Counted from the stretch's first letter, positions 11,424 to 59,293 are shown. The stretch: 64,000 nucleotides of DNA from Macrostomum lignano (GCA_002269645.1 NIVC01002132.1:124001-188000); one strand, 5' to 3'. Notes: generated from the sequence alone by a model not told the origin. Made by a program: numbers and translations.

Positions 11424-14400
11424 TTTGTCACAGACAGCTACCATAGACACCCGTTTGCAACCGTTTGTCACGGAAGGCTACCATAGACAACCGTTTGCAA
11501 CCGTTTGTCACGGAAGGCTACCATGGACACCCGTTTGTCACGGAAGGCTACCATAGACACCCGTTTGTCACGGAAGGCTACCATAGACAACCGTTTGCAA
11601 CCGTTTGTCACGGAAGGCTACCATAGACAACCGTTTGCAACCGTTTGTCACGGAAGGCTACCATGGACACCCGTTTGTCACGGAAGGCTACCATAGACAC
11701 CCGTTTGTCACGGAAGGCTACCATAGACAACCGTTTGCAACCGTTTGTCACGGAAGGCTACCATAGACAACCGTTTGCAACCGTTTGTCACGGAAGGCTA
11801 CCATAGACAACCGTTTGTCACGGAAGGCTACCATAGACAACCGTTTGTCACGGAAGGCTACCATAGACAACCGTTTGTCACGGAAGGCTACCATAGACAA
11901 CCGTTTGTCACAGACAGCTACCATAGACACCCGTTTGTCACGGAAGGCTACCATAGACAACCGTTTGTCACGGAAGGCTACCATAGACAACCGTTTGCAA
12001 CCGTTTGTCACGGAAGGCTACCATAGACAACCGTTTGCAACCGTTTGTCACGGAAGGCTACCATAGACAACCGTTTGTCACAGACAGCTACCATAGACAA
12101 CCGTTTGTCACGGAAGGCTACCATGGACACCCGTTTGTCACGGAAGGCTACCATAGACACCCGTTTGTCACGGAAGGCTACCATAGACACCCGTTTGTCA
12201 CGGACAGCTACCATAGACAACCGTTTGTCACGGAAGGCTACCATAGACACCCGTTTGTCACAGACAGCTACCATAGACAACCGTTTGTCACGGAAGGCTA
12301 CCATGGACACCCGTTTGTCACGGAAGGCTACCATAGACACCCGTTTGTCACGGAAGGCTACCATAGACAACCGTTTGTCACGGAAGGCTACCATAGACAC
12401 CCGTTTGTCACGGAAGGCTACCATAGACACTCGTTTGTCACGGAAAGCTACCATAGACACCCGTTTGTCACGGAAGGCTACCATGACACCCGTTTGTCAC
12501 GGAAGGCTACCATAGACACCCGTTTGTCACGGAAGGCTACCATAGACACCCGTTTGTCACGGACAGCTACCATAGACAACCGTTTGTCACGGAAGGCTAC
12601 CATAGACACCCGTTTGTCACAGACAGCTACCATAGACAACCGTTTGTCACGGAAGGCTACCATGGACACCCGTTTGTCACGGAAGGCTACCATAGACACC
12701 CGTTTGTCACGGAAGGCTACCATAGACACCCGTTTGTCACGGAAGGCTACCATAGACACCCGTTTGTCACGGAAGGCTACCATAGACACTCGTTTGTCAC
12801 GGAAAGCTACCATAGACACCCGTTTGTCACGGAAGGCTACCATAGACACCCGTTTGTCACGGAAGGCTACCATAGACACCCGTTTGTCACGGAAGGCTAC
12901 CATAGACAACCGTTTGTCACGGAAGGCTACCATAGACACCCGTTTGTCACGGAAGGCTACCATAGACACCCGTTTGTCACGGAAGGCTACCATAGACACC
13001 CGTTTGTCACGGAAGGCTACCATAGACAACCGTTTGTCACGGAAGGCTACCATAGACACCCGTTTGTCACGGAAGGCTACCATAGACAACCGTTTGTCAC
13101 GGAAGGCTACCATAGACACCCGTTTGTCACGGAAGGCTACCATAGACACCCGTTTGTCACGGAAGGCTACCATAGACACCCGTTTGTCACGGAAGGCTAC
13201 CATAGACACCGTTTGTCACGGAAGGCTACCATAGACACCCGTTTGTCACGGAAGGCTACCATAGACACCCGTTTGTCACGGAAGGCTACCATAGACACCC
13301 GTTTGTCACGGAAGCTACCATAGACACCCGTTTGTCACGGAAGGCTACCATAGACACCCGTTTGTCACGGAAGGCTACCATAGACACCCGTTTGTCACGG
13401 AAGGCTACCATAGACACCCGTTTGTCACGGAAGGCTACCATAGACACCGTTTGTCACGGAAGGCTACCATAGACACCCGTTTGTCACGGAAGGCTACCAT
13501 AGACACCCGTTTGTCACGGAAGGCTACCATAGACACCCGTTTGTCACGGAAGGCTACCATAGACACCCGTTTGTCACGGAAGGCTACCATAGACACCCGT
13601 TTGTCACGGAAGGCTACCATAGACACCCGTTTGTCACGGAAGGCTACCATAGACACCCGTTTGTCACGGAAGCTACCATAGACACCCGTTTGTCACGGAA
13701 GGCTACCATAGACACCCGTTTGTCACGGAAGGCTACCATAGACACCGTTTGTCACGGAAGGCTACCATAGACACCGTTTGTCACGGAAGGCTACCATAGA
13801 CACCCGTTTGTCACGGAAGGCTACCATAGACACCCGTTTGTCACGGAAGCTACCATAGACACCCGTTTGTCACGGAAGCTACCATAGACACCCGTTTGTC
13901 ACGGAAGGCTACCATAGACACCCGTTTGTCACGGAAGGCTACCATAGACACCCGTTTGTCACGGAAGGCTACCATAGACACCCGTTTGTCACGGAAGGCT
14001 ACCATAGACACCCGTTTGTCACGGAAGGCTACCATAGACACCCGTTTGTCACGGAAGGCTACCATAGACACCCGTTTGTCACGGAAGGCTACCATAGACA
14101 CCGTTTGTCACGGAAGGCTACCATAGACACCGTTTGTCACGGAAGGCTACCATAGACACCCGTTTGTCACGGAAGGCTACCATAGACACCCGTTTGTCAC
14201 GGAAGGCTACCATAGACACCCGTTTGTCACGGAAGCTACCATAGACACCCGTTTGTCACGGAAGGCTACCATAGACACCGTTTGTCACGGAAGGCTACCA
14301 TAGACACCGTTTGTCACGGAAGGCTACCATAGACACCCGTTTGTCACGGAAGGCTACCATAGACACCCGTTTGTCACGGAAGGCTACCATAGACACCCGT

Positions 14401-15565
14401 TTGTCACGGAAGGCTACCATAGACACCCGTTTGTCACGGAAGGCTACCATAGACACCCGTTTGTCACGGAAGGCTACCATAGACACCCGTTTGTCACGGA
14501 CAGCTACCATAGACACCCGTTTGTCACGGAAGGCTACCATAGACACCCGTTTGTCACGGAAGGCTACCATAGACACCCGTTTGTCACGGACAGCTACCAT
14601 AGACACCCGTTTGTCACGGACAGCTACCATAGACACCCGTTTGTCACGGAAGGCTACCATAGACACCTGTTTGTCACGGACAGCTACCATAGACACCCGT
14701 TTGTCACGGAAGGCTACCATAGACACCCGTTTGTCACGGAAGGCTACCATAGACACCCGTTTGTCACGGAAGGCTACCATAGACACCGTTTGTCACGGAA
14801 GGCTACCATAGACACCCGTTTGTCACGGACAGCTACCATAGACACCCGTTTGTCACGGAAGGCTACCATAGACACCCGTTTGTCACGGAAGGCTACCATA
14901 GACACCCGTTTGTCACGGAAGGCTACCATAGACACCCGTTTGTCACGGAAGGCTACCATAGACACCCGTTTGTCACGGAAGGCTACCATAGACACCCGTT
15001 TGTCACGGACAGCTACCATAGACACCCGTTTGTCACGGAAGGCTACCATAGACAACCGTTTGTCACGGAAGGCTACCATAGACACCCGTTTGTCACGGAC
15101 AGCTACCATAGACACCCGTTTGTCACGGAAGGCTACCATAGACACCCGTTTGTCACGGAAGGCTACCATAGACACCCGTTTGTCACGGAAGGCTACCATA
15201 GACACCCGTTTGTCACGGAAGGCTACCATAGACACCCGTTTGTCACGGAAGGCTACCATAGACACCCGTTTGTCACGGAAGGCTACCATAGACACCCGTT
15301 TGTCACGGAAGGCTACCATAGACACCCGTTTGTCACGGAAGCTACCATAGACACCCGTTTGTCACGGAAGGCTACCATAGACACCCGTTTGTCACGGAAG
15401 GCTACCATAGACACCCGTTTGTCACGGAAGGCTACCATAGACACCCGTTTGTCACGGAAGGCTACCATAGACAACCGTTTGTCACGGAAGGCTACCATAG
15501 ACACCCGTTTGTCACGGACAGCTACCATAGACACCCGTTTATCACGGAAGGCTACCATAGACAGC
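11424..15565. repeat. 30-bp satellite array (CCCGTTTGTCACGGAAGGCTACCATAGACA), ~138 units
   Basis: Direct tandem periodicity; all ORFs in this interval are repeat translations. Confidence 0.98.
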
Positions 15566-16129: not shown

Positions 16130-19100
16130 ATGAATTCTGCCTTGAATTTGGTGCTCGCTCTGCTTCTGATAGGTAAGAATGCGAATTCTGAATACTACCA
16201 AAAAGTCACGGTTCTGATAGAACAGCTCAAAATCCATGATTGACATTTTGTTTAAAATATGAGAAAGAGCAAGAAAAAGTGCTGTCCGTAAGTTCATTTT
16301 AATACCGTATAATTGTAACACGCGGTATTTGGCAGTGTGAGATCAAAAACACGAAAACCCAGCGAACGATATATTTATTGGCATCAATGTACATATAAAT
16401 CGAGATGTACATTCCTATATACAAAGCGACAATGATTCAGCAATATCCACGAGTTTGCCTCTAAGGCAAGAAATTTCCCATTTTCCCCCCAACAAAAAGA
16501 GTAAAAGCAAATGAGGTAATAAAATCAAACGGTAGCACAAAAAGACAACCAGCTACAACAGATGCAATAAAAGAACAGTCCACACCGGTCTCTGTCTCTC
16601 ACTCAGTGCTCACGCCAAAGAAGTCCGGAGGCCGCCGCTGCCTGGCCGGGTACCGCCGCTCGGTCTGGCTGGTCTCCGGCGCGACCTGGTGGGTCACCGG
16701 CTGCTGGCGGAGCTGGTCAGAGTCGGGCTGGGCTGCGAACCGCTTGCGCAGCCGGTTCACGTGCACCCAGCGGACCGGCCGGCTGCCGAAGGCGCGGCGG
16801 ATGCACACCGAGTGACCGCGCTGCTCAAGCACCGTCCAGCCCGGCTCCCAGTAGGGCGCCGACTTTGAGCGCCGCATTTCGATGCTGAGCAGCACCTTGG
16901 CACCTTGCGGGAACTGCGGCAGGTCCGCCGCCTTCTTGTTGTGAGCGGCCTTCTGCTGCTGCCCGGCGGCTACCAGGTTCTTCTCGATGAACTCGCGGAT
17001 CCGGGCCAGCCGCCGCTCCAGCAGTGCTGAGTAGGTGCCGATGTCGAACTGCTGCTCGCTGCTCTGCACCTCCGGCGAGAGCTGCGGGTCGCGGCCGGTC
17101 ATCACCGTCAGCGGCGCCACATTGGTTGAGCTGTGGACCCTGTAGTTGTAGGACAGGACCACCAGCAGCAGCTGCTCCTCCCAGCTGGACTCAGTCTCGG
17201 CGAACAGCCTCAGCAGCTGCAGCAGCGACTTGTTGCCGCGTTCCACCAGTCCATTTCCCTGCGGATGGTACGGCGTAATGCGCATCTTCTTGATGCCCAG
17301 TGTTTTCAGCGTCTCCTGGAACAGCTCGCTCTCGAAGTTCGCGCCCTGGTCCGAGTGGATGACGGACGGGACTCCGAGCAGAGAGAAGACTTTCACTGCA
17401 GCGTCCGCGATGGTTTTGGCGGTCGGATCTGGCATCGGCACGGCGGTCAGGAACTTGGAGAACTGGTCCTGCATCACCAGTAGGTAGCTGTTGCCTCGGT
17501 CCGATGTCGGCACCTTCAGCACATCGATCGCCACCGTCTGCCAGGGCTTGCCGATCGGCATCTCACCGAGAGGGGCTGCGGGCCGGCGCTGCGCCTTTTT
17601 CAGCTGGCAGGTCTGGCACTCCTGGCAGAAACTCGCGGTCTGCTTCAGCGTGTCGGCCATTTTCTCCGGTCCGAAATGACCGCCGATGCCCTCGTGAATG
17701 TCGGTCAGGAACTGGCGCCGCAGCAACTCCGGAATCACGGGAACCTCCCTCGGTCTTGCAGCGTCGTTGAAGGCCGGGCAGAGAAGGCCGTCTTGAATTC
17801 GCAACTTCCGCCAGATGCGGCTGAGGTGTCGCAGTCTGTTGTCGGACCATCTTGGCGGAGTCGTGCTGTCTTTGGTCACCTGACTGTAGTCGCTCTGTCC
17901 TTGTCGCTGAGCTCAAGGAAGGCCACCAGAGCCTCGCCATCCAGAAACGTTGGCAGATGCAGGTGTTTGTCATTTGTCCACTTGTTGGCTGCTGCACACA
18001 GCTCAAACCGCTGCAGCCACTCATTAAAGTTGCCAGAGCGCCAAAAGTTCTTGGAATCGCGCGGTGGCTGCCCTCTGCCATTCTGAGCTCTGCTACCACT
18101 TGTGACACGCGGTATTTGGCAGTGTGAGATCAAAAACACGAAAACCCTGCGGGGCAGCGAACGATATATTTATTGACATCAATGTACATATAGATCGAGA
18201 TGTACATTCCTATATTTAAAGCGACAATGATTCAGCAATATCTACGAGTTTGCCTCTAAGGCAAGGAATAAAACATTACGAGCGTACGAATGATTTCTGC
18301 AAAAGCGGTATCATTGCTCTAAAAACACTTCCAGGTCTCGTCTGCCCGTTAGCAGCCGAAGAGGCAAATTTAAGCGAAGTTTTTCGTCTGGCACAGTCGC
18401 TCACTGGCTCGGTCGTTACCGTGGGGCAGGGGACGAACAGCTGCAAGACTGTGGAAGTTCTGCAGGGCATCCGCAGCAGCGTTGAGTGCCTTTTCCGGTG
18501 CAGCAGCTCAGGCTGTGCAGCTGCGGCGTTCAAGGACGGCGTCTGCAGGACTGTTCATGTTGAGCCTGTGCTGTTCCGTCTGGCCAGGCCGGAATGCAAC
18601 ACAACCTTCAATGGCACCAGCGGTGAAATGGTCTTTGTTTCACAGAAGATCAACATCCTGTGGAACATCACCTATAATACATATAGAAGTGAGCAGTTGC
18701 CTTCTAATGCTCAGATTTCAATGAGATATAAGACTTCCTCAAAGATTTGCTTATTACGGCATACTGCTTCGCATTCCAGACAGCAGCTCGGGCCGGACCG
18801 GCTCCATCCAGACCCTGACGGTGAACGAGACCGGCTGCTACCGCATGGAGGCGCTCGGAGCCAGAGGCGGCAGCTCCAACCCGGCCTTCAGCCCCGTCTA
18901 CACCGGCGGATTCGGCGCCCGCATCGGAGGCAGCTTCAACCTGACGGCGGGAACGCAGCTCAGCCTGGTGATCGGACAGCGGGGCGGCGACGCCACTCAA
19001 AGTTACAACCACGCCGCTTCTGGCGGCGGCGGCGGCACCTTCGTGTACCGGAGCTCGGACAACTTGCTGTACCTGGCTGCTGGCGGAGGCGGCGGTGGCT

Positions 19101-19751
19101 CCATCGGATACAAAGGTATAAATTCAGATACAGGCTATGAATTAAGAATAACATGATACTTCTAACGTGATTTCACTTCTAACGATACCAACGATTCTAA
19201 AGTACTTTTAATGGTGATCACCGTAGTGCATTTAGGTGACTCACAGCTCCGATCTTTGCTATCTTTGTGGCCTCAACGCAGGCGTGAACGGATCGGCTGG
19301 TCCAAACGGAACCGACTCGGTCGGCACGGCTTCCTACGTCGGCTACGGCGGTGCGAACGGGCAGCCCGGGAGCTACGGACCGTCTACAAGGACATACAAG
19401 GGCGGCCTGGGAGCCGGCTGGCTGGGAGTGGCCATCTCCAGGACCAGAACCTGCTACGGCGATCGCGGAGGCGGCATCAGCCAGGGCTGGGTCGGCGGCG
19501 TCGCCGGACACGGCAACGAGGGCGCTGTCGGAGGCTTCGGTGGAGGCGGAGGCGGCAGCCATCAAAGCGGCGCTGCCGGAGGCGGTGGCGGCTTCAGCGG
19601 CGGCGCTGCCGGTAGCTGGTATCCGCAGGCCGGCGGCGGCGGCGGCTCCTTCTGCTCCGGCGTCGGCTGCAGCGGCGAGTCGGGCGGCAACTCGCTGAGC
19701 GACAGCGGCCTGCTGCTGTTCGGCCTGATCCGCCCTGGCAGCTGCGCCTGA
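16130..19751 (+). CDS. Secreted glycine-rich (ALK/LTK-like, Gly_rich) domain protein, copy 2, intact, 400 aa. Exons 16130-16172, 18335-18688, 18780-19115, 19282-19751
   Basis: Phase-compatible GT-AG exons total 1203 nt. Signal peptide MNSALNLVLALLLIGLVCPLAA; Cys-rich PAN/apple-like segment (CKTV..ECLFRCSSSGC..GVC); TGCYRMEALGARGG..GARIGGSFNL..LVIGQRG..GGGGGTFV..LYLAAGGGGG; no TM segment or kinase. Confidence 0.85.
16314..18275 (-). mobile_element. Internally deleted Ty3/Gypsy LTR retrotransposon (gag N-terminus plus integrase, no PR/RT/RNaseH) in intron 1 of glycine-rich gene copy 2
   Basis: LTRs 16314-16480 and 18101-18275 (TG..CA). PBS TGGTAGCAGAGC (initiator-Met tRNA type) next to the 18101 LTR end; PPT GGGGGGAAAA next to 16480; no clear TSD. 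Confidence 0.9.
16599..17879 (-). CDS. Retroviral-type integrase of the Gypsy element
   Basis: HHCC motif (IHEGIGGHFG..CQECQTCQ); DDE triad (AIDVL, HSDQGANF, NGLVERGN); 426-aa open frame. Confidence 0.9.
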   Translation of the reverse strand: MTKDSTTPPRWSDNRLRHLSRIWRKLRIQDGLLCPAFNDAARPREVPVIPELLRRQFLTDIHEGIGGHFGPEKMADTLKQTASFCQECQTCQLKKAQRRPAAPLGEMPIGKPWQTVAIDVLKVPTSDRGNSYLLVMQDQFSKFLTAVPMPDPTAKTIADAAVKVFSLLGVPSVIHSDQGANFESELFQETLKTLGIKKMRITPYHPQGNGLVERGNKSLLQLLRLFAETESSWEEQLLLVVLSYNYRVHSSTNVAPLTVMTGRDPQLSPEVQSSEQQFDIGTYSALLERRLARIREFIEKNLVAAGQQQKAAHNKKAADLPQFPQGAKVLLSIEMRRSKSAPYWEPGWTVLEQRGHSVCIRRAFGSRPVRWVHVNRLRKRFAAQPDSDQLRQQPVTHQVAPETSQTERRYPARQRRPPDFFGVSTE

Positions 19752-20692
19752 GCCGGCCATGCCTTCTACTGGAGGCAAAAAGACAAAATTTTGTGGTTTG
19801 GATGACTCTGACAACTTGGCGTTTGAGTTTAGGACAGGTTTCGACCAACACGTGTTTTTGACTGACCTTTGCGGACACTGCATAGCTGATGCTGCTATTG
19901 AGATTGTTTAAATGTTTAATCAACTTAAGTTCTTTTCTTAATCTTTATTAACACACGATACGCTTGGCATACGATAAACGTTCCTTGCTTTATACTCTAT
20001 GATAAACTGTAAACCTTCAGTTATCAAATTACGCAAAATTAATTTTCAAATAGGTTTCAGACTTCTTACGAGACGGAATTAAAATTTATGCTATGTTCTC
20101 TACTGAAGCTGATGAGATGTTTTGTTCCTGTTTAAATGTTTAAAAAACTTAATCAACTTAAGTCAAATATGGCTTTTCTCTTGTTAATCTTTATTAACAC
20201 ACGATACGCTTGGGCATACGATAAACGTTCCTTGCTTTATACTCTATGATAAACTGTAAACCTTCAGTTATCAAATTACGCAAAATTAATTTTCAAAATA
20301 GGTTTCAGCCAACCTAATGCCATCATTTTTTAATAATATTTTAATAACACTTCTACTATTTATTAAATTCTGTGTTCATATTTAAAATTTTGCTTGTTGT
20401 TTCTACGGATCGTATTTTCGAAATCTGAACCCACTCTTTTGTCAACAAAATATTTTCCCTTGTGGCAATAAACTGTTGAATTATTTTCTTTAAGACTTTA
20501 GAATAGCACTTGCATATAAACTGTACGTTTTACTGAAGGCTGCTGCAGTAACTTATTAAACTTATTTCAGCTTTGTCAAAGAACCAGTTTTTTGTTTATG
20601 TCAGAGAATTCCCCGTTTTGGTAAAAAATGCTTACACAAAAATTAAATTTGAGTTTATTGAAAGCCACCGCGTGTCGTCTAAGCATGACAGC

Positions 20693-22200: not shown

Positions 22201-23512
22201 CTCAGCCCCGAGCTCCGGTGAGTTTTCATCTGACGAAAGCCCAACTGGCTCAGCCGCCTTCAAGCTCGGGTGGAGAAGAACGTTTGCAAGTTGGTGCACA
22301 CTCTCCAGGACACTCCAGCACCGCTGAGGGCCAGCAGCTCTTCTCGGCTGTGGCCTTCAAGAACGGAGTCTGTCAGATGGTTCGGTGGTTCGCGATTCCT
22401 GCGTTGTATGCGAAGATCATGGAGTGCGACATCGAAAACGAATTCAAAGCCACACGGGACGAGGAGGTCCTTGTGTCAGAAAATTTCAATCTGAGCAAAG
22501 CCGTCATCGTCTATAGAAGTGAGGCCTTTGCTGAACTTTTTGTGTGTGAGTTTTGATCGCACAGCGACACCGGAGCTCACAGAGGAGCTGACCCGCATTC
22601 CAGACAGCAGCTCGGGCAGGACCGGCTCCATCCAGACCCTGACGGTGAACGAGACCGGCTGCTACCGCATGGAGGCGCTCGGAGCCAGAGGCGGCAGCTC
22701 CAACCCGGCCTACAGTCCCGTCTACACCGGCGGATTCGGCGCCCGCATCGGAGGCAGCTTCAACCTGACGGCGGGAACGCAGCTCAGCCTGGTGATCGGA
22801 CAGCGGGGCGGCAACGCGACTCAAAGTTACAACCACGCAGCTTCTGGCGGCGGCGGCGGCACCTTCGTGTACCGGAGCTCGGACAACCTGCTGTACCTGG
22901 CTGCCGGCGGAGGCGGCGGTGGCTCCATCGGATACAAGGGTATAAATTCAGATACAGGCTATTATGATCAACATGTAATACTGCATGTGCATTTAGGTGA
23001 CTCACAGCTCCGATCTTTGCTATCTTTGTGGCCTCAACGCAGGCGTGAACGGATCGGCTGGTCCAAACGGAACCGACTCTGTCGGCACGGCTTCCTACGT
23101 CGGCTACGGCGGTGCGAACGGGCAGCCCGGGAGCTACGGACCGTCATCAAGGTCATTCAAGGGCGGCCTGGGAGCCGGCTGGCTGGGAGTGGCCATCTCC
23201 AGGACCAGAACCTGCTACGGCGATCGTGGAGGCGGTATCAACGAGAGCTGGATTGGCGGCGTCGCCGGACACGGCAACAAGGGTGCCGTCGGAGGCTTCG
23301 GTGGAGGCGGAGGTGGCAGCCATCAAAGCGGCGCTGCCGGAGGCGGTGGCGGCTTCAGCGGCGGCGGAGCCGGTAGCTGGTATCCGCAGGCCGGCGGCGG
23401 CGGCGGCTCCTTCTGCTCCGGCGTCGGCTGCAGGGGCGAGTCGGGCGGCAACTCGCTCAGCGACAGCGGCCTGCTGCTGTTTTGGAAGAAACGCTTTGGC
23501 AGCTGCGCCTGA
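22201..23512 (+). pseudogene. Glycine-rich (ALK/LTK-like) domain gene, copy 3. Exons 22604-22939 and 23043-23512 intact; N-terminal exon frameshifted; signal exon not found
   Basis: Last two exons have the same lengths (336, 470 nt) and near-identical protein to copy 2. Upstream exon (ends 22518) is split over frames and abuts the 67-bp array. Confidence 0.7.
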
Positions 23513-24690
23513 GTTGCGAAGTGGAAGCCGAAAGCTGGAAGCTACCAGGCACAGTCGAAGACGCCACCAGAGGAGCTGCTGTGCTTACTGATTTACTTAG
23601 TTATATGCTAATAATATAATTTTGAGCCTGTGATTAATCAATAGATTTTATAAGTGATGCCGCACGAAACAAAATTTCCTGCAGAAGTTTGAACTTTTTT
23701 AGCGGTCTCTGTTGCCAATGCGTTCAATTGTCTCGTAGTAAGACCAGATTGTATCCCTAATTAATTTATGAATGTTGCTTCAATTTGAAAGCTGAACTGT
23801 TTCTCTATCCAAATCTGAATATGAACTCTAATTCTAATCTAAATATACTAAATCTCTAATCGTCTACTATAGCTATTAAATTTAAAGCAGAATTTCACAA
23901 GCAAAATTGTCTGCTATCAGCGGCAAATTTGGAACAGCCAGCCATAATTTGCCATGCCCCACTCGAACCCATTCTTCTTATTACTACAAGTAGGCCTATA
24001 AGGGTCTATGACAGAATAATTGACAAATACGCTCGTACTACAGAGATGTCAATTCGGTGCAGTCCCTGTAGCGGTTAGCAAACTTTATCTATACGTAAAT
24101 GTGACTACGTAATGTGCAGATAGAGCAGGGTTTTCAGATGTTTTGACGCAAAAAACGCAAATTATACTACTATCTGAAAATGAAGTAAGTAGTATACAAA
24201 AACGCTATCCTAAGCGTGATATGGAAATATGTAGTCGTAATAATCCATGTGCTCATATATGTACATTAATTCCATGTACATTATTCCCTATCTATCTCAA
24301 ATTGTACATTAATTCCATGTACATTAATCCCTATCCCAAATTGTCTATCCCCAATTCTACATGTACACTCACATTAATCTACAGTGTCATCCCCAGCGCG
24401 CGCACACCCCAAGATTACAACTCGAAACCCTACTACATGTACAATATCATCCAAATGAGTCAACACCCAAGTTTTACAAACCACGTTATATACATATTCC
24501 TATTTATATGTCAATTATTCAAAATCTACATGTAGCTGATTACACTACTACCTTTAGTAGAGTTACAAATCAAGATTCTATTGAAAAAGACTGTATTCAT
24601 ATAGTTTTCACATTGGAAAAGCGTATATTTTTTCATTTCAATAATTGAAAAAGAGAGCAAAAACAGTAAGAGACAACAGCAAGTTGAGAC

Positions 24691-25149
24691 TTAATTATAG
24701 CCTGTACTACCAAACCCTCCTGCACCGCGAATTGAGTGGCTGCCAGCGGCCTCCTCTTCGCCATTCCCTCTATAGAGATCCCTTACAACTACGGGAGCAA
24801 TCATTACACGCTCCAAAACTAATTGAGCGATACGGTAGCCCCGAGTTATGAACCAGTCCGCACTGCCATGATTAAATATCACCACAGTCAATTCTCCAGT
24901 ATAGTCAGGGTCGATCACGCCGGCGCCCACTTGTATAGACTTGCGCAACGCCAGCCCAGACCGGCCGGCAATCCGAGCGTAGGTCCCATCAGGCGGTTGG
25001 ATCGAAATTCCGAGAGGCACCTGCGCAACCGACCCTGCCCGGACAACCACATCTTCAGAGGCAAAGAGATCGTAGCCAACAGAACCGATCGTCTGGCGAG
25101 CCGGCGGGCGGGCACCTTCAGTCAGCAGCGACACCTTTAAAGCAGCCAT
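24691..25149 (-). CDS. dut: dUTPase (trimeric family), left-arm copy, intronless, 152 aa from MAALKV
   Basis: All five motifs: GSVGYDL, IAGRSGLA, GVIDPDYTGE, GYRIAQL, RGAGGFGSTG. Confidence 0.97.
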   Translation of the reverse strand: MAALKVSLLTEGARPPARQTIGSVGYDLFASEDVVVRAGSVAQVPLGISIQPPDGTYARIAGRSGLALRKSIQVGAGVIDPDYTGELTVVIFNHGSADWFITRGYRIAQLVLERVMIAPVVVRDLYRGNGEEEAAGSHSIRGAGGFGSTGYN

Positions 25150-26264
25150 GATGACGTAGCTGGAATTGGTGAGTTTGCGGTTATAATCAGTCACAGTGTT
25201 TACACACGGAATGGTTTATAGTTTTTTTTCATTCTAAATATCATTAATCGAAAAAATGGTAAAAATCTCAACGCAATATTTAAATTTTGCAAAACAATTT
25301 ATTTGAAAAGAATGTGCATGTGGATAGCGTAAGTGTGCATACACAACATTTATAGCGAGTCGAGATATATACTATGGGTGCATGAAAATTTAGATTGAGT
25401 GCAGACACAACACTTGATATAAAACAAGATATGTACAAGGTGCATGAAAATAAAAATGCGTGCAGACACAACATTAAATTGTCAACAATATTAACAAAGC
25501 CCCGAGCCGGGGAATAATCTGTCCAACTCTTCAGCGACCTCCTCATGGAGGTCAGCCTCATACACCCGCCGCTCCTTCACCGCCGTGTAATACGCACGCT
25601 CCTCAGAGCGGCTGCCAAAACAATAGTCGGCTAGCTAGAAAAGGGAATGGGCGGGGAAAGTTTTCCGCTATAATGCATTGAAATTTTGAATCAGCAATTA
25701 GTTGCTAAATGAAAAGTTTTCGGATAAAATGCAATTATTTACCATGTCCAAGTCTGGCTCGCGGCACCAACGCCGCAAAAACTCTTGGTAGGTTGCCTCG
25801 CCATCGTCGTCAGCAGCACCAACAGCAGCCTTTTCACTAGCAGCAGCGTCAGTACTGTGCTGCTGCTGCTGCTGCTGCAGCCCCATCCGAGGGGCTAAAT
25901 TGATGCCCAATCGGCAGCGGCTCGTCTTCTTATTCTTCAGTTGCCGCGGTTGCTGATTCAGACTGCTGCTGCTGCCTTCAATAGTCGCGGCGGCAGCGGT
26001 GGCGACTGCGGCATATTCGCAAGGGCTGGCTCCCAGCAGCCCACAGTCATTACCGGGCTGGCAACATTCATTGCCGCAGTAGCTACCGCCGCACCAACCT
26101 TGAAAGTCGTCAACGCTGCTAGTGTCTCCACTGATGCTACTGCTGCTGCTGCTGCTGCTGCCGCTACTACTGTTGTTGCTGTTGTCAGACTTACACGCCA
26201 GACTTAAAACCGGTCGGGCGGTAGATCGAAGCGGCGGGTTCCGGCCTACTCGACCGCCCCCAAC

Positions 26265-29200
26265 CACAGACCAATAAGTATAACTAGACTGCGCGTGTGG
26301 GGCAAGAAATGTGTGCCTCTTTCCAAGTAGGAAAAATGGCACCCCAGCTCCCACCCCCTCACGATCGATATTTTTGGCTTCCTTTCCCTTCCAACCCCTC
26401 TGTCATTGGGCCCGCTGTATTAATTGTTGCCTTTTGCCATGGAACACGGATTGCTAACCATTTAACCAACTTTATTGCAACTAGCAATTTAACAGTTTAA
26501 ATCCAGTATTATTTTTCGATTTATTAAAAACTAAAAAACCGTACAAAAACGCTTGCAGACAAAATGAGACCTTTTTGTTGTTGCTGATAGCATAGAAGCA
26601 GTAATAAAAGTATATAAATAGCTCACCTGGTTTCGAATATACTATAGATTAAGAAATATCGCTGCTCGAAGTAGTCTCTGCCTCCTTCCTGGTCTTCTTC
26701 CTGCGCGAGAAAGTTCTTTAGCTAGTTTTTTCATTCTGATCTTTATGAAGAGCCCGGCCATGACTCGAATTAAATGGAGCTTGTGCGACTCAATGCCGCT
26801 GCTTGCGGATGCCGAATGCGAGTCAAGCTCAGGGAATAGATTGCTCGACATGCGCAAAGTCTCGTGAACTGCTACGTCACTGGAGAATTGGCTGTTATAG
26901 CTGGCACGTCGAATAACAGACTCAGCACTGAGCAGCACACGGAAGACATCGCTGCTGGGAAAAATCAAGCCGCCAGTTCCTTCCTTGTTCAAAACATTCT
27001 TCAAGGCAACAAGTGAGCAAGGGGCACGAAAAGCTGGTGGCGTCTCGGAGCTGGCAGTCAGAGCTGACCTGCACGTAGCACATTCGACAACTTTCAACAT
27101 GCTTCGCACAACTGCTCCGGCAATATAGTACACAATAGACTGGCAAATCTCACAATTAGATGCATTCATGCAGTGCTGGATGGATTCAAGACTCAGTCCC
27201 ATATCATTCTGAACTTTCATCTTCCACTGCTTCTGTGCTGATTCAGCTGATGATGGTAGGCATGACAAGGACAGTTGAATGGTGGCATCCTGCTGCTTCA
27301 CATTCGGGCTGACAGACTGGAGAATCCCACCTCCGGCATGCACCAGCAGCTGCCTAAATGCCGAGCGAAACTGCTTTGGTGTCGGGTTGTGGTTCCAGCC
27401 ATTTCGAAGCCTGACTGCATTAAAGAATAGTTCTAGAAAGTCCTGAGACAGCTTGTAAGTGCAAAGAAAGAAGAATTCGCCAGTTGAAAATAAATACTTG
27501 GCAAGCGCAATAACGGCATGGCAATTGGTGATGAAGCCTAAAAATCCTGTCTTCTTTGCAGTGTCAACGATTTTGCATCTAGCTGGAGTTTCTAAGCTCT
27601 TGAGAAGCTGGATCGAGTCAGTGAAGAAGTCAATCCAGTCAGACTGGTTGTCAGCTCTTAGAGCCATTTTAGCCCCATAATTTACCAGTCGCTTCGAGTT
27701 GAACGCATCGAACAGATCATTGATGTGCTCAATAAAATCTGCTGTCACTAATACATCGGAATGATCAAATCCGGCCAAGCCTTGCTTGTGCACCCATCGT
27801 AATGAGTCAGCCACCGACTTACTAAAAAGTTGTGAGGCCAAATAAACTTTCATCTTTAAATTAGCAAAGTTAATGTGATGCCTGCTCAGCTTATTGCCCA
27901 GTCTGAGTCCATGGCTCTCCTGTACTTGCTGCAACATGCACACATATTTCCAATCAATATTTCCTCTGTCCGGCCAAACAAATGTTCCCAGGGACTGCCA
28001 CTGGTTTCGAATCAGCTTCAAATGTGCGGCACATCCAAGAAGGCTGAAACCTGAATGCCGGGATCGCAGGGGTGTGGGAAAGAGGCAACTATCTCATTGG
28101 GAGAGCTTATTCTGGCACCAAGAAGCTCGATCGCTCGAATATTGTGCTGAGTCCCATCGCATGTAAATGATGAGGCAATAACGCCAACCTGGTAGAGCCG
28201 CTGGATTGATTCCTCTACGACACTTGAAAGAAATTCGCCATCAACTCCGCTCACTAGAAAATATCCTAAAGGTAGCTTCCAATAGCTCTTGAGACCCACT
28301 GCCATCACTACCAATGCTGAAGTTGCCTCCTGATCAGTTGACTTGCCATCGCCTTTGTCAACATAGCCAAAGAAACTGCCTTCATTTGAATTCCACTCAA
28401 CCATCGCTTCCAGTGACATTTCATCAGCTACAACGTTGCAGTAGTCGAAGGATCGGTCATCATTGGAGCTGCGTCGCCGAGAAAGTTCCTGAAAGGCTTG
28501 GTCACAAAATCCTGGAAGGCATTTCGCATTCGAGAGCCATCTTCTAAGCGAAGCTGGATGCGGAAGCTGAAAGTACTGTCTCACATACGCATAGGCCTTC
28601 GGGCTGTAAAAGTGCAATGTGGAGGCGAATTTCCGCACTTCGTGGGAGAATATTCTTGTCCTCTTGGTAATCTTGCTTGGCAAAATGCTGCTAAGCAGTG
28701 AATCGGAGGTCAAGAAATTCAGCCGAGATGCAGCAGCTTCATTCAAAATACATTTGGCCCTTAACTCTCGAATCACATCTTTCAGGGTCTTGGCTCTTTG
28801 TTTAATTTGCCTATGCTTTGAGCGCAGTGATCGAATTTTGCGGTACTTGCTCTGGAGCGACCGCCTTAAGATTTCAACAGCCTTTGCACTTTTCTTGAAC
28901 CGGCTATGAGTAGATAGAAGCCTTCTGTATCTGCGCCGAAGATTTTTAAGTGCTCTCACCTTCTTGTCGAATTCTTCTCTGGGCACGCAGTTAACATGGA
29001 TGTCCGGTCCAGGATCTTCATCTTCCTTGGCAGCCACTGGAGCTTCCGGCTCGCTGCTCTCTGTTGATTTACAAAATGCAGCGAAATCAACTTCGCGAGC
29101 TGCGGCCGCGGTGGCAGTCTTCCGTTTCTTCTCAGCTTTCGGCTGCAGATGGTCAGGGAACGCCGGGAAGATGGAAGGAACGGCATTTGGATATAGCCGT

Positions 29201-29756
29201 CTTTTGACGCTAGGCAGAAAGCCTGCAAATTGCTCTTTGAAGCAAGATTCCTCAAAATGCATTGAGCAGACTTGCGTGGATGGCGATGGCTCAAAATCTT
29301 TTCTTTTCAGCGCTATCAGCCACTTTTTCCTTATTTCCTTGTCCTTTGGAAAAGTATGAAAGGACACTCCCGCCAAAGACATTGCTGAGTTGTTCGAGCA
29401 GCCAGCAGCGCAGCAAAAGCTGCCGTAATTTCCTTTTCTTTTCCTCGGCAATTTAGAAGATTCAGGTTGTTCTTCCATTTCGTTTTGAGAAATTATTAAT
29501 TTTTTAATAACTTTGCTTAGCTGTTTAAGGTTAGTATAGCATTGCTATTGTGGTCCCCAAGCCGCATTAATATACATGTTAATTTAAAAAAGGCCAGTGC
29601 AGACAGCTGAAGAAGGGCCAGTCTTCCCCAAGCCAAAAATATCGATCGTTTTGGGCTGGGGTAGAGAGGACCATTTTTTGCTTTGTCATTTTGTCAAAAA
29701 ACGAGCCCACGCAAGCAATGCTGGATGCGCAGTCTAGTTATACTTATTGGTCTGTG
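26265..29756 (-). mobile_element. P-superfamily (THAP9-like) DNA transposon, 3492 bp
   Basis: Perfect 30-bp TIRs CACAGACCAATAAGTATAACTAGACTGCGC; 8-bp TSD CCCCCAAC at 26257-26264 and 29757-29764; the right arm of the host element shows the empty site. Confidence 0.95.
26642..29478 (-). CDS. THAP-domain P-element-type transposase (~945 aa) with a single 1-bp frameshift at ~28021
   Basis: THAP C2CH (CCAAGC..VCSMHF..AVPSIF); VADEM, TCDG, DVPH and SQDFLELFF motifs. One added T restores DVPHILKLIRN. Confidence 0.93.
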
Positions 29757-30143
29757 CCCCCAACCCCGCACCACAGGATTGAGGGAGATCGGCCGCAACG
29801 CAGTGCTACAGCCACCGCAACTAACTGCGACGGCTCTTCTACACTGCTGCTGCTGCTGCTGCTGCTGCTACCGTTGCCGCTATTCATTGTGTGTGTGTGT
29901 GTGTGTGGTTGATCGTAAATTTGAAAAGATTTTCAGCCGCGCAGGGGTCTCGTTTTTATAGTGATTTTACGAAGTCTCTCATTGGCTCCGCCAGTCCGCA
30001 AGCAAGCAAGCAAGCAAGCAAGTCTGCCCAAACCTCAGCCCAGCCAGCGAGTTAGTCAGTCTGACTCAACAGCGAGCTATACCTGTTTTAACAATAAAAT
30101 TTCAGATTCTCAAAAATTTCAGAGTCTAGGTTATTTCAATTTC

Positions 30144-31031
30144 AAAAAACAAATGAAATAAGACCATTTTAATTCCAGAGATGGTATTTGTCAATTCCAG
30201 TTTATTCAAAAGATGGTTTTCACATTATTAGAGTTGATATAATCGCAGAAACACAAATTCCCACAAGTAAAAATTATACAATTGAGAGTTAATCAGCATC
30301 AACATCAAAGGCCCTGCCTAAATTTAAAGCAAAAGGCTACGAATATGAAGTAGCCTTCACAGCGGATATTGTCGATGTCGAGACACATTTGCGAAAATAA
30401 TAACAACCCTCTGCGCTGACCTGCACGCTAACGATTTCATCTCAGCCAAACTAACGGCCAACAAAATGTTGCTCACTATTAACGTGCCGCCCGCTTCACT
30501 GCAGAGCTTGTTTTCAAGCACATAAACAAGGTTCTACAGTAGAGTTATTATTATACAAACCATATATCCCCACAAAAGCAATGATTATACAGCCCACACA
30601 TTACGAATATGAATATTCCCACACAAAAAGCAATGATTATACAGCCCACACAAAAAGAGTCTTTTTAGCAATTGTCTTAATCATTTCACTCGACACGCAT
30701 TGTAGGCAGCTGCTGCAGTTTGGCCTTGTCGCTGCTGTAGATTAGCTTAATTCGCTTGTTCTGCTCCTTGATCACAGCAGCCCAGGCAGCAAAGGCCGGC
30801 TCGTGAGGCCCAATCTGATGGGTCGGGGTCTTGAAAAGCTGTTCATCAGTCAGGCCAGCGGCAGCAGCAGCTCGTCGAGCTCAGTCGAGTCCGGGGGATA
30901 CGAGTGCCACCACTTGTAGCTGCTGCCGCTGCCGCTGCCGCCGTCAGTCGTAGAAAGCTTCTTCACCTGCGGCTGCAGGTGAGTCCGGGGGATACGAGTG
31001 CCACCGATTGAACTGCAGCCGAACTGCAGCC
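30144..31031. other. Unique spacer of the foldback element with two convergent ORF remnants (30296-30525 +; 30686-~30975 -)
   Basis: Plus: KALPKFKAKGYEYEVAFTADIVDVETHLRK/IITTLCADLHANDFISAKLTANKMLLTINVPP. Minus: GLTDEQLFKTPTHQIGPHEPAFAAWAAVIKEQNKRIKLIYS. Confidence 0.55.
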
Positions 31032-31189
31032 GAAATTGAAATAACCTAGACTCTGAAATTTTTGAGAATCTGAAATTTTATTGTTAAAACAGGTATAGCT
31101 CGCTGTTGAGTCAGACTGACTAACTCGCTGGCTGGGCTGAGGTTTGGGCAGACTTGCTTGCTTGCTTGCTTGCTTGCGGACTGGCGGAG

Positions 31190-31222
31190 CCAATGAGAGA
31201 CTTCGTAAAATCACTATAAAAA
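31190..31222 (+). promoter_or_regulatory. Putative Pol II promoter (CCAAT box plus TATA box) in the arm, mirrored in the left arm
   Basis: CCAAT at 31190 and TATAAAAA at 31215, 73 nt upstream of ATG 31288; a second TATAAA at 32455 lies upstream of dUTPase. Confidence 0.5.
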
Positions 31223-31287
31223 CGAGACCCCTGCGCGGCTGAAAATCTTTTCAAATTTACGATCAACCACACACACACACACACACA

Positions 31288-32184
31288 ATGAATAGCGGCA
31301 ACGGTAGCAGCAGCAGCAGCAGCAGCAGCAGTGTAGAAGAGCCGTCGCAGTTAGTTGCGGTGGCTGTAGCACTGCGTTGCGGCCGATCTCCCTCAATCCT
31401 GTGGTGCGGGGTTGGGGGCGGTCGAGTAGGCCGGAACCCGCCGCTTCGATCTACCGCCCGACCGGTTTTAAGTCTGGCGTGTAAGTCTGACAACAGCAAC
31501 AACAGTAGTAGCGGCAGCAGCAGCAGCAGCAGCAGTAGCATCAGTGGAGACACTAGCAGCGTTGACGACTTTCAAGGTTGGTGCGGCGGTAGCTACTGCG
31601 GCAATGAATGTTGCCAGCCCGGTAATGACTGTGGGCTGCTGGGAGCCAGCCCTTGCGAATATGCCGCAGTCGCCACCGCTGCCGCCGCGACTATTGAAGG
31701 CAGCAGCAGCAGTCTGAATCAGCAACCGCGGCAACTGAAGAATAAGAAGACGAGCCGCTGCCGATTGGGCATCAATTTAGCCCCTCGGATGGGGCTGCAG
31801 CAGCAGCAGCAGCAGCACAGTACTGACGCTGCTGCTAGTGAAAAGGCTGCTGTTGGTGCTGCTGACGACGATGGCGAGGCAACCTACCAAGAGTTTTTGC
31901 GGCGTTGGTGCCGCGAGCCAGACTTGGACATGGTAAATAATTGCATTTTATCCGAAAACTTTTCATTTAGCAACTAATTGCTGATTCAAAATTTCAATGC
32001 ATTATAGCGGAAAACTTTCCCCGCCCATTCCCTTTTCTAGCTAGCCGACTATTGTTTTGGCAGCCGCTCTGAGGAGCGTGCGTATTACACGGCGGTGAAG
32101 GAGCGGCGGGTGTATGAGGCTGACCTCCATGAGGAGGTCGCTGAAGAGTTGGACAGATTATTCCCCGGCTCGGGGCTTTGTTAA
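31288..32184 (+). CDS. Ser/Gln-rich orphan protein, 262 aa, two exons (31288-31932, 32041-32184), right-arm copy
   Basis: Donor ATG|GTAAAT and acceptor CCTTTTCTAG|CTA join in phase 0, giving ..YQEFLRRWCREPDLDM-LADYCFGSRSEERAYYTAVKERRVYEADLHEEVAEELDRLFPGSGLC*. Confidence 0.65.
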
Positions 32185-32525
32185 TATTGTTGACAATTTA
32201 ATGTTGTGTCTGCACGCATTTTTATTTTCATGCACCTTGTACATATCTTGTTTTATATCAAGTGTTGTGTCTGCACTCAATCTAAATTTTCATGCACCCA
32301 TAGTATATATCTCGACTCGCTATAAATGTTGTGTATGCACACTTACGCTATCCACATGCACATTCTTTTCAAATAAATTGTTTTGCAAAATTTAAATATT
32401 GCGTTGAGATTTTTACCATTTTTTCGATTAATGATATTTAGAATGAAAAAAAACTATAAACCATTCCGTGTGTAAACACTGTGACTGATTATAACCGCAA
32501 ACTCACCAATTCCAGCTACGTCATC

Positions 32526-32984
32526 ATGGCTGCTTTAAAGGTGTCGCTGCTGACTGAAGGTGCCCGCCCGCCGGCTCGCCAGACGATCGGTTCTGTTGGC
32601 TACGATCTCTTTGCCTCTGAAGATGTGGTTGTCCGGGCAGGGTCGGTTGCGCAGGTGCCTCTCGGAATTTCGATCCAACCGCCTGATGGGACCTACGCTC
32701 GGATTGCCGGCCGGTCTGGGCTGGCGTTGCGCAAGTCTATACAAGTGGGCGCCGGCGTGATCGACCCTGACTATACTGGAGAATTGACTGTGGTGATATT
32801 TAATCATGGCAGTGCGGACTGGTTCATAACTCGGGGCTACCGTATCGCTCAATTAGTTTTGGAGCGTGTAATGATTGCTCCCGTAGTTGTAAGGGATCTC
32901 TATAGAGGGAATGGCGAAGAGGAGGCCGCTGGCAGCCACTCAATTCGCGGTGCAGGAGGGTTTGGTAGTACAGGCTATAATTAA
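32526..32984 (+). CDS. dut: dUTPase, right-arm copy, same translation as the left copy
   Basis: Same five motifs; identical translation in the ORF track. Confidence 0.97.
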   Translation: MAALKVSLLTEGARPPARQTIGSVGYDLFASEDVVVRAGSVAQVPLGISIQPPDGTYARIAGRSGLALRKSIQVGAGVIDPDYTGELTVVIFNHGSADWFITRGYRIAQLVLERVMIAPVVVRDLYRGNGEEEAAGSHSIRGAGGFGSTGYN

Positions 32985-33857
32985 GTCTCAACTTGCTGTT
33001 GTCTCTTACTGTTTTTGCTCTCTTTTTCAATTATTGAAATGAAAAAAATATACGCTTTTCCAATGTGAAAACTATATGAATACAGTCTTTTTCAATAGAA
33101 TCTTGATTTGTAACTCTACTAAAGGTAGTAGTGTAATCAGCTACATGTAGATTTTGAATAATTGACATATAAATAGGAATATGTATATAACGTGGTTTGT
33201 AAAACTTGGGTGTTGACTCATTTGGATGATATTGTACATGTAGTAGGGTTTCGAGTTGTAATCTTGGGGTGTGCGCGCGCTGGGGATGACACTGTAGATT
33301 AATGTGAGTGTACATGTAGAATTGGGGATAGACAATTTGGGATAGGGATTAATGTACATGGAATTAATGTACAATTTGAGATAGATAGGGAATAATGTAC
33401 ATGGAATTAATGACATATATGAGCACATGGATTATTACGACTACATATTTCCATATCACGCTTAGGATAGCGTTTTTGTATACTACTTACTTCATTTTCA
33501 GATAGTAGTATAATTTGCGTTTTTTTGCGTCAAAACATCTGAAAACCCTGCTCTATCTGCACATTACGTAGTAATGTGTCACGAGTTTGTGTGCAACTAC
33601 AGGCAGTGCGCTCGCTCATTCTGCAGCAACATGTCAGATTTCCACAGTGGTCAAACAAGCGGTCAACTTTTCCCAGGTCTCAGCCTCAAGTTATTGCAAT
33701 CGCCCGCGGTTCTCGTCTCAACTGTTGGGTGATGCAGTTTTGCGTCGCAAGGCCCTGGCTTGGGCTGGTGAGAAGAGAGTGAAGAGTTATGACTAGAGCT
33801 GGATTAAAGCTGCCACTCTCGGTTCTCATGAAGAGGGTGTTTTGAGCTTACGAACTT

Positions 33858-34098
33858 TCCAGCTTGTGATGCTTCCAGCTTGTGAAGTTTCGAGCTTGTG
33901 AAGTTTCGAGCTTGTGAAGTTTCGAGCTTGTGAAGTTTCGAGCTTGTGAAGCTTCGAGCTTGTGAAGTTTCGAGCTTGTGAAGTTTCGAGCTTGTGAAGT
34001 TTCGAGCTTGTGTAGCTTCGAGCTTGTGAAGTTTCGAGCTTGTGAAGTTTCGAGCTTGTGTAGCTTCGAGCTTGTGAAGTTTCGAGCTTGTGAAGTTT
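33858..34098. repeat. 16-bp minisatellite (GAAGTTTCGAGCTTGT)
   Basis: Direct periodicity. Confidence 0.93.
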
Positions 34099-36068: not shown

Positions 36069-36605
36069 TCACATGGCCACAAGGATCTCAAACTGCTTGC
36101 TAGAGTGCTCAGCGCCGCCCCAGCTGAAGTAGGCGCACTGATGCGGACTATAAACTTTACCGGCAGCCGCGTCGCCATTAACAAATCCCTTGCCGATGTA
36201 AAGGGGTTCGTTCCTGTCAGTGTGTCCGCCAATGATGGCGTTTGGCGGCACGTTGAAGCCCTGGCAGGGGGCCCAGGCCCAGCCGCAGCCGAAGCAGGGC
36301 ATGCCGGAGTCGCACAGCACCTCGTACTGCTGCACAAGGTGCTCCTTGCCGCCGTAGGGCAGGCAGACGTGGCCGTGGCCCTGCACCAGCTTGGCCGGGA
36401 TCAGCTCGTTGCCGTGGCGGGCCCGGCTGACGTACACGGGCGAGCCGTCGCGCTGAGTGCCCACCTGCACCGCCCTGGGCGGGACCTGACCGTTGGAGGC
36501 CGGCACCCAGCTCAGGCACACCTGGGCCGGCTTGCCGCTGCCACCGCCGCCACCGTACGGCGGAGGCTGGGCGCCCGGTTGCGGGTAAGGCTGGTTGCCG
36601 TACAT
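36069..36605 (-). CDS. DM9-repeat (DUF3421) protein, 178 aa, two DM9 units
   Basis: WVPASNGQVPPRAV..YVSRARH..IPAKL..YGGKEH..YEVL and WAPCQGFNVPPNAIIGG..LYIGK..GKV..WGGAEH..FEIL. Confidence 0.9.
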   Translation of the reverse strand: MYGNQPYPQPGAQPPPYGGGGGSGKPAQVCLSWVPASNGQVPPRAVQVGTQRDGSPVYVSRARHGNELIPAKLVQGHGHVCLPYGGKEHLVQQYEVLCDSGMPCFGCGWAWAPCQGFNVPPNAIIGGHTDRNEPLYIGKGFVNGDAAAGKVYSPHQCAYFSWGGAEHSSKQFEILVAM

Positions 36606-41055: not shown

Positions 41056-41814
41056 GATTTAGGCAATTGATAAAGAGAAGATTTTATCAATTTTCTCTAT
41101 ATTATACAGAATAAGCTTACATGTACATGTAGATTTGCACTTATTCTCCAGCTGGGTCCAAGCCATAGACAGCTGATCAGTTCTGAATTCTCTGCTAGAT
41201 AATGCACAGCGCTGAATGGGGTTTTGCCATAGACGAATTCGGCAAAGAAAAATCTGATCTATGCGGCTGATTTCTAAGAAATGAAGTGTAGCGTAGCGTC
41301 CTGCTACTGGTTGTTGTCCATGGCCAAGCTTTCAATGCAAGACTCGGGGGCCTACTGAAGCGTACAGATAATTGCCGTGCTGTTCATGCCTTGCATCGAG
41401 CGACAGATTGCGGCAGTTTAAGAGAGAGTCTTACACTTATACAGTTTGAAGGGCCTTGTATTTGGTAGGGCAGCACTCTCCACAGGCAGCAATTGCTGGC
41501 ACATATGGGAGGCACCAGCGTGTGCTGGCCAGGCCAGAAGGGAGAGAGAAGTGAAAGCGAAAGTTTGACAGACGCAAACACGCGGCGAGCTCATAATGAG
41601 TGGGAGGGGGGTAGAGAGCGGGGGCAAGAGGAGGCGACTTGCAGCACACGATCTGGTGGGCGGTAATGAGCTTGCTACCGACCTGTGCAAACTAAAGCGC
41701 AATTCCACTCATGACATCTACAACTCATGCAGCCTTAGAGCGCGTCTGCCTTGTCTTAGGAGCTTTTAGAGCTGCTTTCAGCTGAAAGAAATCCTGTCCA
41801 AAGACTTAATCGGC

Positions 41815-43062
<1,248 letters not shown>

Positions 43063-43759: not shown

Positions 43760-59293
<15,534 letters not shown>

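Follow-up and report, generated by a model that had tools for sequence, protein, structure and literature searches.

What kind of element is built almost entirely of two mirror-image arms that each carry the same pair of genes, and how did its palindrome and its insertion into the chromosome come about? This question is raised by a locus in a stretch of 64,000 nucleotides from the genome of the flatworm Macrostomum lignano (GCA_002269645.1, NIVC01002132.1:124001-188000; hereafter the window, with positions counted from its first letter), where a 6-bp target-site duplication (TSD) encloses a palindromic element. Using repeat analysis together with profile and homology searches, we consider it probable that the element is a defective, non-autonomous Maverick/Polinton (adintovirus-like) derivative, in which one end was mirrored around a short rearranged centre and which was integrated into the flatworm genome as a unit. 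Derivation from a Maverick as such, by whatever route the palindrome formed, appears very likely.

The hexamer AATGTG, read directly, abuts both ends of the element, lying immediately outside an inverted repeat that ends exactly at ACTACG... on one side and ...CGTAGT on the other (Table 1); a six-for-six match at these fixed flanking positions would arise by chance in about one of 4,096 cases. The repeat finder and a global alignment give a left arm of 2,540 bp, which is interrupted by a secondary transposon, and a right arm of 2,541 bp. The two differ by no substitution and by three 1-bp indels, two of which fall in homopolymers (A6/A7 and T6/T7) and the third of which is a single A outside a homopolymer. 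The element as it stands measures 9,469 bp, and subtracting the 3,492 bp of the secondary transposon and one copy of its 8-bp TSD leaves 5,969 bp, of which the arms make up 85%. These results agree with an initial annotation of the locus, which had reported arms of 2540 and 2541 bp with three 1-bp indels, AATGTG at both ends, and an element of about 5.97 kb that is about 85% arms once the insertion is removed. The terminal 27-mer occurs at just two sites in the window, namely the two ends of the element, where shuffled sequences lead one to expect none. From the centre outward, each arm presents a promoter-like region, the leader exon of a polymerase gene, an intact dUTPase gene and finally the element terminus, the outermost 590 bp being non-coding and including a 43-bp subterminal direct repeat.

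The hexamer AATGTG is also found at positions 8-13 of each terminus (24087-24116 and 33560-33578), and the left flank TACGTAAATGTG is near-identical to the terminus TACGTAATGTG. Insertion may favour targets that resemble the ends, or the likeness may be due to chance. Extended similarity between flanks and arms is absent, and nesting of the element in an older copy is thus unsupported.

The transposon in the left arm provides a further view of the history of the palindrome. It belongs to the P-element superfamily, as indicated by its THAP and P-type transposase domains, its terminal inverted repeats (TIRs) of about 30 bp and a duplication in the 7-8-bp range. Five Pfam domains are recognizable in its transposase, namely the THAP domain, the Tnp_P_element helix-turn-helix, the N- and C-terminal parts of the RNase H-like domain and the GTP-binding insertion domain; the frameshift that divides the gene could be a sequencing error if the assembly is a long-read one. 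The insertion splits exon 1 in the left polymerase-leader gene, while the right arm contains the octamer CCCCCAAC once and uninterrupted, that is, as the empty target site. The presence of the P element in one arm only implies that the two arms are physically separate DNA and that the insertion is younger than the inverted duplication. It is thus a very young, nearly intact insertion with a built-in empty-site control in the other arm, the two together forming a before/after pair.

These observations bear on the possibility that the palindrome is an assembly artefact, created by a fold-back chimeric long read or by a mis-join. An artefact of this kind would account for the lack of substitutions between the arms and for the fact that two of the three differences are in homopolymer length, which is typical of long-read error. 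However, a fold-back read would have mirrored the P element as well, and this element is present with its own 8-bp TSD in one arm. Moreover, the 888-bp centre is unique and element-related, and the outer flanks differ from each other yet share a matching 6-bp TSD, whereas a fold-back read would come without such flanks. We accordingly regard an artefact as highly improbable and are confident that the structure is real.

Mavericks are characterized by a 6-bp TSD combined with long TIRs (PMC8097293). Both marks are present here, the arms being longer than the hundreds of bp usual for such TIRs. Very long inverted arms with little between them are likewise typical of the Foldback transposons, such as Drosophila FB and Galileo, whose arms consist of short tandem subrepeats, carry no genes and are flanked by 7-9-bp duplications. 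Despite the shared layout, a Foldback/Galileo-type element is ruled out by the unique, gene-bearing arms, in which the 43-bp repeat reaches only about two copies, and by the 6-bp TSD. An inverted segmental duplication of host DNA is ruled out by the exact ends, the TSD and the polymerase homology described below.

The inner gene of each arm is predicted to comprise two exons. In the right copy, exon 1 (31288-31932) is followed by a 108-nt GT..AG intron (31933-32040) and by an exon 2 of 144 nt including the stop codon (32041-32184). The initial annotation had described each arm as containing a CCAAT/TATA region, a spliced orphan gene and a dUTPase, all directed outward from the centre. This arrangement, with its two-exon gene, is what a direct reading gives, but the status of the gene as an orphan has to be given up in view of its homology. 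When the 262-aa product was compared with 5.8 billion proteins in a word-indexed search, no match was returned, probably because its runs of Ser, Gln and Ala swamped the candidate list. In contrast, an exhaustive HMMER scan of 1.84 billion representative proteins recovered a single match (E-value 7.1e-22; 83% identity), in which residues 134-215 of the leader product align to residues 42-120 of a M. lignano protein described as a 'DNA-directed DNA polymerase' (UniRef100_A0A1I8GWG8; hereafter P0241). The similarity breaks off at ...DLDM, precisely where the splice donor is predicted. This supports the donor and shows that exon 1 is a 5' exon of a P0241-type gene. Exon 2 has no match in Pfam or among the PHROGs.

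Three profile comparisons, weak but concordant, suggest that P0241 is a protein-primed polymerase: it matches the Pfam domain DNA_pol_B_2 with an E-value of 1.1e-5 (25.0 bits, just under the cut-off of 25.8), PHROG 1907, labelled 'DNA polymerase', with 6e-5, and PHROG 17 with 0.015 over its exonuclease part. A metagenome scan with P0241 further led to a virus-like contig (L013; MDTB01030519.1, 7168-10163), whose polymerase, protein-primed and complete at 978 aa, matches DNA_pol_B_2 with an E-value of 2.7e-46 and which has a nearby gene with a capsid-like N-terminus. P0241 is collinear with this polymerase over the exonuclease and motif-B regions (BLASTP E-values 5e-11 and 0.003). The three ORFs (open reading frames) downstream of the polymerase gene in this contig all start with MFQQRKM, one of them being that with the capsid-like N-terminus. 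Searches of PDB and NCBIfam recovered no match to P0241, IMG/VR contained no relative, the metagenome scan yielded distant polymerases only, and an exact look-up in a public collection of gene positions returned no contig.

The outer gene of each arm encodes a dUTPase. Its product scores 107.2 bits against the Pfam dUTPase family PF00692 (cut-off 22), and an alignment with 118 relatives displays all five dUTPase motifs, including the C-terminal RGxxGFGSTG, as expected of a trimeric dUTPase. It is separated from the leader gene by an interval of about 340 bp that contains a TATA-like site and an AATAAA signal. Next to the TATA-like site, repeats of the form TGTTGTGT[C/A]TGCAC are candidate regulatory repeats of the dUTPase gene. 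Among the 5.8 billion proteins nothing is more than 54% identical to this dUTPase, so that it does not represent a recently copied host gene. One relative, P0043, with 50% identity, comes from another locus of M. lignano (L001; NIVC01004009.1, 660-6273). The two are sisters in a neighbour-joining tree (bootstrap 59/100) and share a long linker before motif V. Its other near relatives are encoded by giant-virus-like contigs (L002, L006 and L009) and a phage-like contig (L008) and not by cellular genomes, and the tree, at low resolution, would place the enzyme in the virus-associated part of the dUTPase family.

Locus L001 offers a template for the gene order of the arms. On one strand it encodes, in succession, a family B DNA polymerase (PolB), the above dUTPase about 210 bp downstream of it, a PLA2-like protein (E-value 3.9e-7) and an ORF in which a Walker-A-like motif is recognizable. 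The PolB is of the protein-primed type (DNA_pol_B_2, E-value 2.3e-19), bears an Endonuclease VII-like insert and, like P0241, matches PHROG 1907. Genes of the PLA2-like type are characteristic of the Alpha adintoviruses (PMC8502044). This gene row indicates that a Maverick/adintovirus-like element with a polymerase followed by a dUTPase exists in the genome that also gave P0241, and the arms retain the same order, with the leader exon in the place of the polymerase. P0241 and the L001 polymerase belong to different lineages, given that BLASTP detects no similarity between them. Comparison of the element with L001 by blastn and tblastx yields a match in the dUTPase only, and tblastn searches of the window with the PLA2-like, Walker-A-like and neighbouring ORFs of L001 recover nothing except the dUTPase. 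At L001 itself the polymerase is split into two ORFs, and pieces of an integrase resembling that of long terminal repeat (LTR) retrotransposons lie at about 8.6-9.4 kb.

Between the arms lies a spacer of mosaic composition. A tblastn search with P0241 detects in it a polymerase-gene remnant that covers residues 136-217 of this protein, is spread over three frames by two frameshifts and lacks both of its ends. The earlier statement that the spacer holds no integrase or polymerase ORF thus remains correct as regards an intact polymerase ORF, but overlooked this broken fragment. The spacer also contains a 27-bp repeat (30574-30657), a short minus-strand ORF and, at its right junction, an 11-bp tandem duplication. 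The latter (GAACTGCAGCC, 2.3 copies, 31010-31034) spans the boundary between spacer and right arm and may have been left behind by the rearrangement from which the palindrome arose. The minus strand of 30690-31000 shows several ORF pieces, including a 55-aa stretch that runs up to a stop, two occurrences of the motif WHSYPPDS and splice-like signals; they have no homologue in Pfam or the PHROGs and may be the remnant of a gene divergent from the arm promoter.

Beyond the dUTPase, the coding capacity of the element is slight. No rve integrase ORF is present in 24104-33572, no ORF is left over that could encode capsid proteins, a packaging ATPase or a maturation protease, and an intact polymerase gene is likewise missing from the element, there being just a leader exon per arm and the spacer fragment. 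The lack of core genes makes the element non-autonomous, and the presence of polymerase remnants alone marks it as a derivative rather than an autonomous member of the Mavericks. All that its promoters could express is a truncated leader peptide and the dUTPase, an enzyme that would hold down dUTP levels while DNA is being made. Polintons of a non-autonomous kind are a familiar category and have entries in Repbase. In this respect the initial annotation, which proposed a core-deleted, non-autonomous Polinton derivative with cargo duplicated in its arms, gains support from the polymerase homology and from the gene order of L001. Its further suggestion of a recent mobilization does not follow from the identity of the arms, which dates the inverted duplication, or reflects continuing gene conversion between the arms, and does not date transposition.

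Set against known systems, the element resembles the Mavericks/Polintons (adintovirus-like) of animals in its 6-bp TSD, its long TIRs, its homology to a protein-primed polymerase and the position of a dUTPase after the polymerase as in L001. In contrast to intact vertebrate Mavericks, which measure 12.7-24.6 kb and have TIRs of 46-1,447 bp (PMC8097293), it is 6 kb long with TIRs of 2.54 kb. Further, its polymerase transcript is apparently spliced, whereas intact vertebrate Mavericks are intronless. A closer parallel comes from butterfly polintons, which have gene-bearing TIRs of about 2 kb (hexon, adenain) and include forms that lack polB and have nevertheless been amplified (bioRxiv 10.1101/2025.02.07.637071). 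As in these, the TIRs here hold whole genes, each of which is consequently present twice, and polymerase-less derivatives occur as TIR-flanked insertions. The butterfly elements, however, keep most of their core genes, while here the TIRs account for 85% of the length, the contents are a dUTPase and a polymerase leader exon, and the core is gone.

How, then, did a single end come to be present twice? The mirror structure could have arisen by a fold-back (snap-back) strand switch during strand-displacement replication of a linear, protein-primed copy. The product would be a molecule whose two ends are copies of one valid terminus, and this molecule would then have been integrated as a unit by an rve integrase supplied by a complete relative, this enzyme making the 6-bp duplication. 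The offer of two valid ends to the integrase would explain why such a duplication is found. The 'highly symmetric palindromic structure' of snap-back defective genomes has been described (PMC13506859). The present element resembles these products of linear replicons in that one genome end is mirrored and the same terminus stands at both ends. Adenovirus incomplete particles, too, are said to contain left-end inverted molecules (reportedly work of Daniell from 1976). Snap-back genomes, however, are free viral molecules in infected cells, whereas we are dealing with a chromosomal insertion, whose shape is what suggests a replicative origin. Formation of the palindrome before integration is plausible, if a little short of an even proposition, and formation after integration is doubtful; the mosaic spacer and the 11-bp junction duplication fit either order. 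Taken to its full extent, the first scenario would make the locus a fossilised snap-back defective Maverick genome that replicated free in the flatworm germ line and was then integrated as a 6-kb mini-genome, a specific version that we put forward as speculative.

The same Maverick origin is also compatible with a palindrome made in the chromosome. According to this explanation a longer element was inserted, and a later break within it was mended by synthesis that ran inward from the terminal repeat on the other side, so that the core genes were erased, the TIRs were stretched to 2.5 kb and nothing was mobilized in the present form. All the homology evidence applies to it equally, natural TIRs would provide the homology needed for a fold-back or break-induced inverted duplication, and the mosaic spacer, the non-collinear polymerase pieces and the 11-bp junction duplication fit a messy repair. 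A single copy is visible in the window. It requires that the outer ends and the TSD remained untouched, which is plausible, and nothing in the window contradicts it; yet it leaves unexplained why the retained part corresponds exactly to the unit from promoter to terminus. We consider formation in place unlikely, and prefer a derivative that was integrated as a unit.

Several observations weigh against this preferred interpretation. Inspection of ORFs, Pfam searches and tblastn found no gene for an integrase, capsid, packaging ATPase or protease in or beside the element. No second copy occurs in the window, and no longer relative with the same termini is present in IMG/VR or the JGI metagenomes, neither of which contains the terminal 27-mer or 20-mer. 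The stretch of P0241 to which the element is similar (residues 45-217) lies N-terminal to the polymerase domain, whose start is near residue 470, and if the P0241 model fuses two neighbouring genes, the link would be to a polymerase-adjacent gene instead of the polymerase. The dUTPase is about 50% identical to everything, and its sister grouping, at 59% bootstrap, is weakly supported. The polymerase remnant in the spacer is non-collinear with either copy of exon 1, implying that the centre was rearranged and that more than one rearrangement is needed. As to the snap-back origin, the shape of the element alone is what points to it. Lastly, the termini ACTACG...CGTAGT lack the vertebrate end motifs (AG)3, (AGT)2 and (AC)3A, ACT-ACG being an imperfect reiteration at best, though these motifs may not apply to flatworms.

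Termini devoid of the usual Maverick end motifs, subterminal direct repeats such as are found in many cut-and-paste transposons, and the absence of Maverick core genes could also be accounted for if the element belonged to another group of TIR transposons and carried Maverick and dUTPase fragments as passengers; IS3EU and Dada are examples of groups with duplications of about 6 bp. Nevertheless, every identifiable piece of the element is linked to Mavericks, with the order of polymerase and then dUTPase kept, and no other transposase is encoded in or next to it except that of the secondary P element, which has its own ends and 8-bp TSD. Membership in such a group is accordingly very unlikely.

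Table 1. Features of the palindromic element and of the transposon inserted in it (positions in the window)
Feature	Coordinates	Strand	Basis or remarks
Left copy of the 6-bp TSD AATGTG	24098-24103		Identical to 33573-33578
Left arm, outer part (terminus ACTACG..., dUTPase, exon 2, intron, most of exon 1)	24104-26264	-	Inverted match to 31411-33572, perfect except for three 1-bp indels
Subterminal 43-bp direct repeat, ~2 copies	24252-24335; mirrored 33332-33412		Tandem Repeats Finder; repeat families D7, D9
dUTPase gene, left copy, 152 codons and stop, intact	24691-25149	-	Mirror of 32526-32984
Polymerase-leader gene, left copy, broken once by the P insertion	25491-29887	-	Mirror of 31288-32184; also matched by P0241 in tblastn
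P-superfamily transposon, 3,492 bp, perfect 30-bp TIRs	26265-29756	-	8-bp TSD CCCCCAAC at 26257-26264 and 29757-29764
P-type transposase gene, two ORFs via one frameshift	26642-29478	-	Pfam E-values 8e-16 to 4.8e-39
Left arm, inner part (start of exon 1, TATA/CCAAT region, upstream sequence)	29765-30143	-	Perfect inverted match to 31032-31410
Unique 888-bp spacer, mosaic	30144-31031		Polymerase-gene fragment, repeat, short ORF, junction duplication
Broken polymerase-gene remnant	30305-30539	+	tblastn with P0241, summed E-value 5e-22, 63-84% identity
Right arm, uninterrupted, 2,541 bp	31032-33572	+	Inverted-repeat alignment
CCAAT box (31190) and TATAAAA (31215), promoter-like by sequence only	31190-31221	+	67-98 bp upstream of the ATG at 31288
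Polymerase-leader gene, right copy, predicted product 262 aa	31288-32184	+	Splice model; homology to P0241
Three copies of the 15-nt motif TGTTGTGT[C/A]TGCAC, 61-64 bp apart	32202-32341; mirrored 25334-25473	+	Repeat families D5/D6
dUTPase gene, right copy, 152 aa, five motifs, intact	32526-32984	+	Pfam PF00692, E-value 6.5e-31; PHROG 135, E-value 2.4e-34
Right copy of the 6-bp TSD AATGTG	33573-33578		Read directly

The surrounding DNA is very rich in repeats. Long minisatellite arrays occupy 8470-9425, 12005-15350, 33839-34098, 41806-43010, 52679-54247 and 59678-60589, and give rise to long but spurious ORFs in several reading frames. A host gene for an ammonium transporter (Amt) is represented by exons on the plus strand at 393-3985, one of its introns being filled by a long minisatellite (~2840-3440). 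Mollusc, nemertean and annelid proteins match these exons at 53-54% identity, and a protein of M. lignano comes closest, with 60% over 57% of the query; together with the single match of the leader product to P0241, this points to a flatworm of or near the genus Macrostomum as the most likely host. Three copies of a glycine-rich gene (10541-11357, 18776-19752 and 22600-23513) are part of a segmental duplication with 80-97% identity, to the left of the element. This duplication provides no paralogous empty site in the window, since the paralogy stops about 590 bp before the insertion. The only rve ORF of the window, on the minus strand at 16599-17879, is 6 kb away and outside the element, and encodes a 426-aa integrase of the LTR-retrotransposon type (rve and H2C2 zinc-binding domains). 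On the other side we find a single-exon gene for a DM9-repeat protein (36069-36605, minus strand; Pfam E-value 2.9e-52), whose exact sequence has no entry in the public collection of gene positions, and, at 49491-51721, a pair of the PIF/Harbinger type, consisting of a Myb/SANT-like ORF on the minus strand (49491-50306) and, on the plus strand, an ORF for a DDE_Tnp_4 transposase (50987-51721). No Rfam families or tRNAs were found in the window.

As regards the Maverick family, TIRs that are long and gene-bearing and polintons that lack polB are already known. What is unusual here is an element that is 85% TIR with its core gone, its twin intact dUTPase genes, its spliced leader and its flatworm host. 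The concept of the family is unchanged by it, and its value is in detail and not in principle. In particular, it points to a flatworm Maverick lineage with a virus-type dUTPase after the polymerase, and with an apparently spliced polymerase leader exon that has its own CCAAT/TATA promoter. Mavericks/Polintons are regarded as viruses that replicate by means of a protein-primed polymerase and integrate by means of an integrase, both self-encoded. The evidence for their free replicating stage in animals is indirect, and a mirrored single genome end is the shape made by strand-switching replication. If more copies were to be found at other sites, they would give a cheap genomic read-out of the mode of replication and of the minimal ends needed for integration. 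Should the locus indeed be a fossilised snap-back genome, it would constitute structural evidence, in an animal genome, for extrachromosomal Maverick replication, and would imply that two copies of a single end suffice for integration; in that case, such mini-elements could spread the twin dUTPase genes as cargo.

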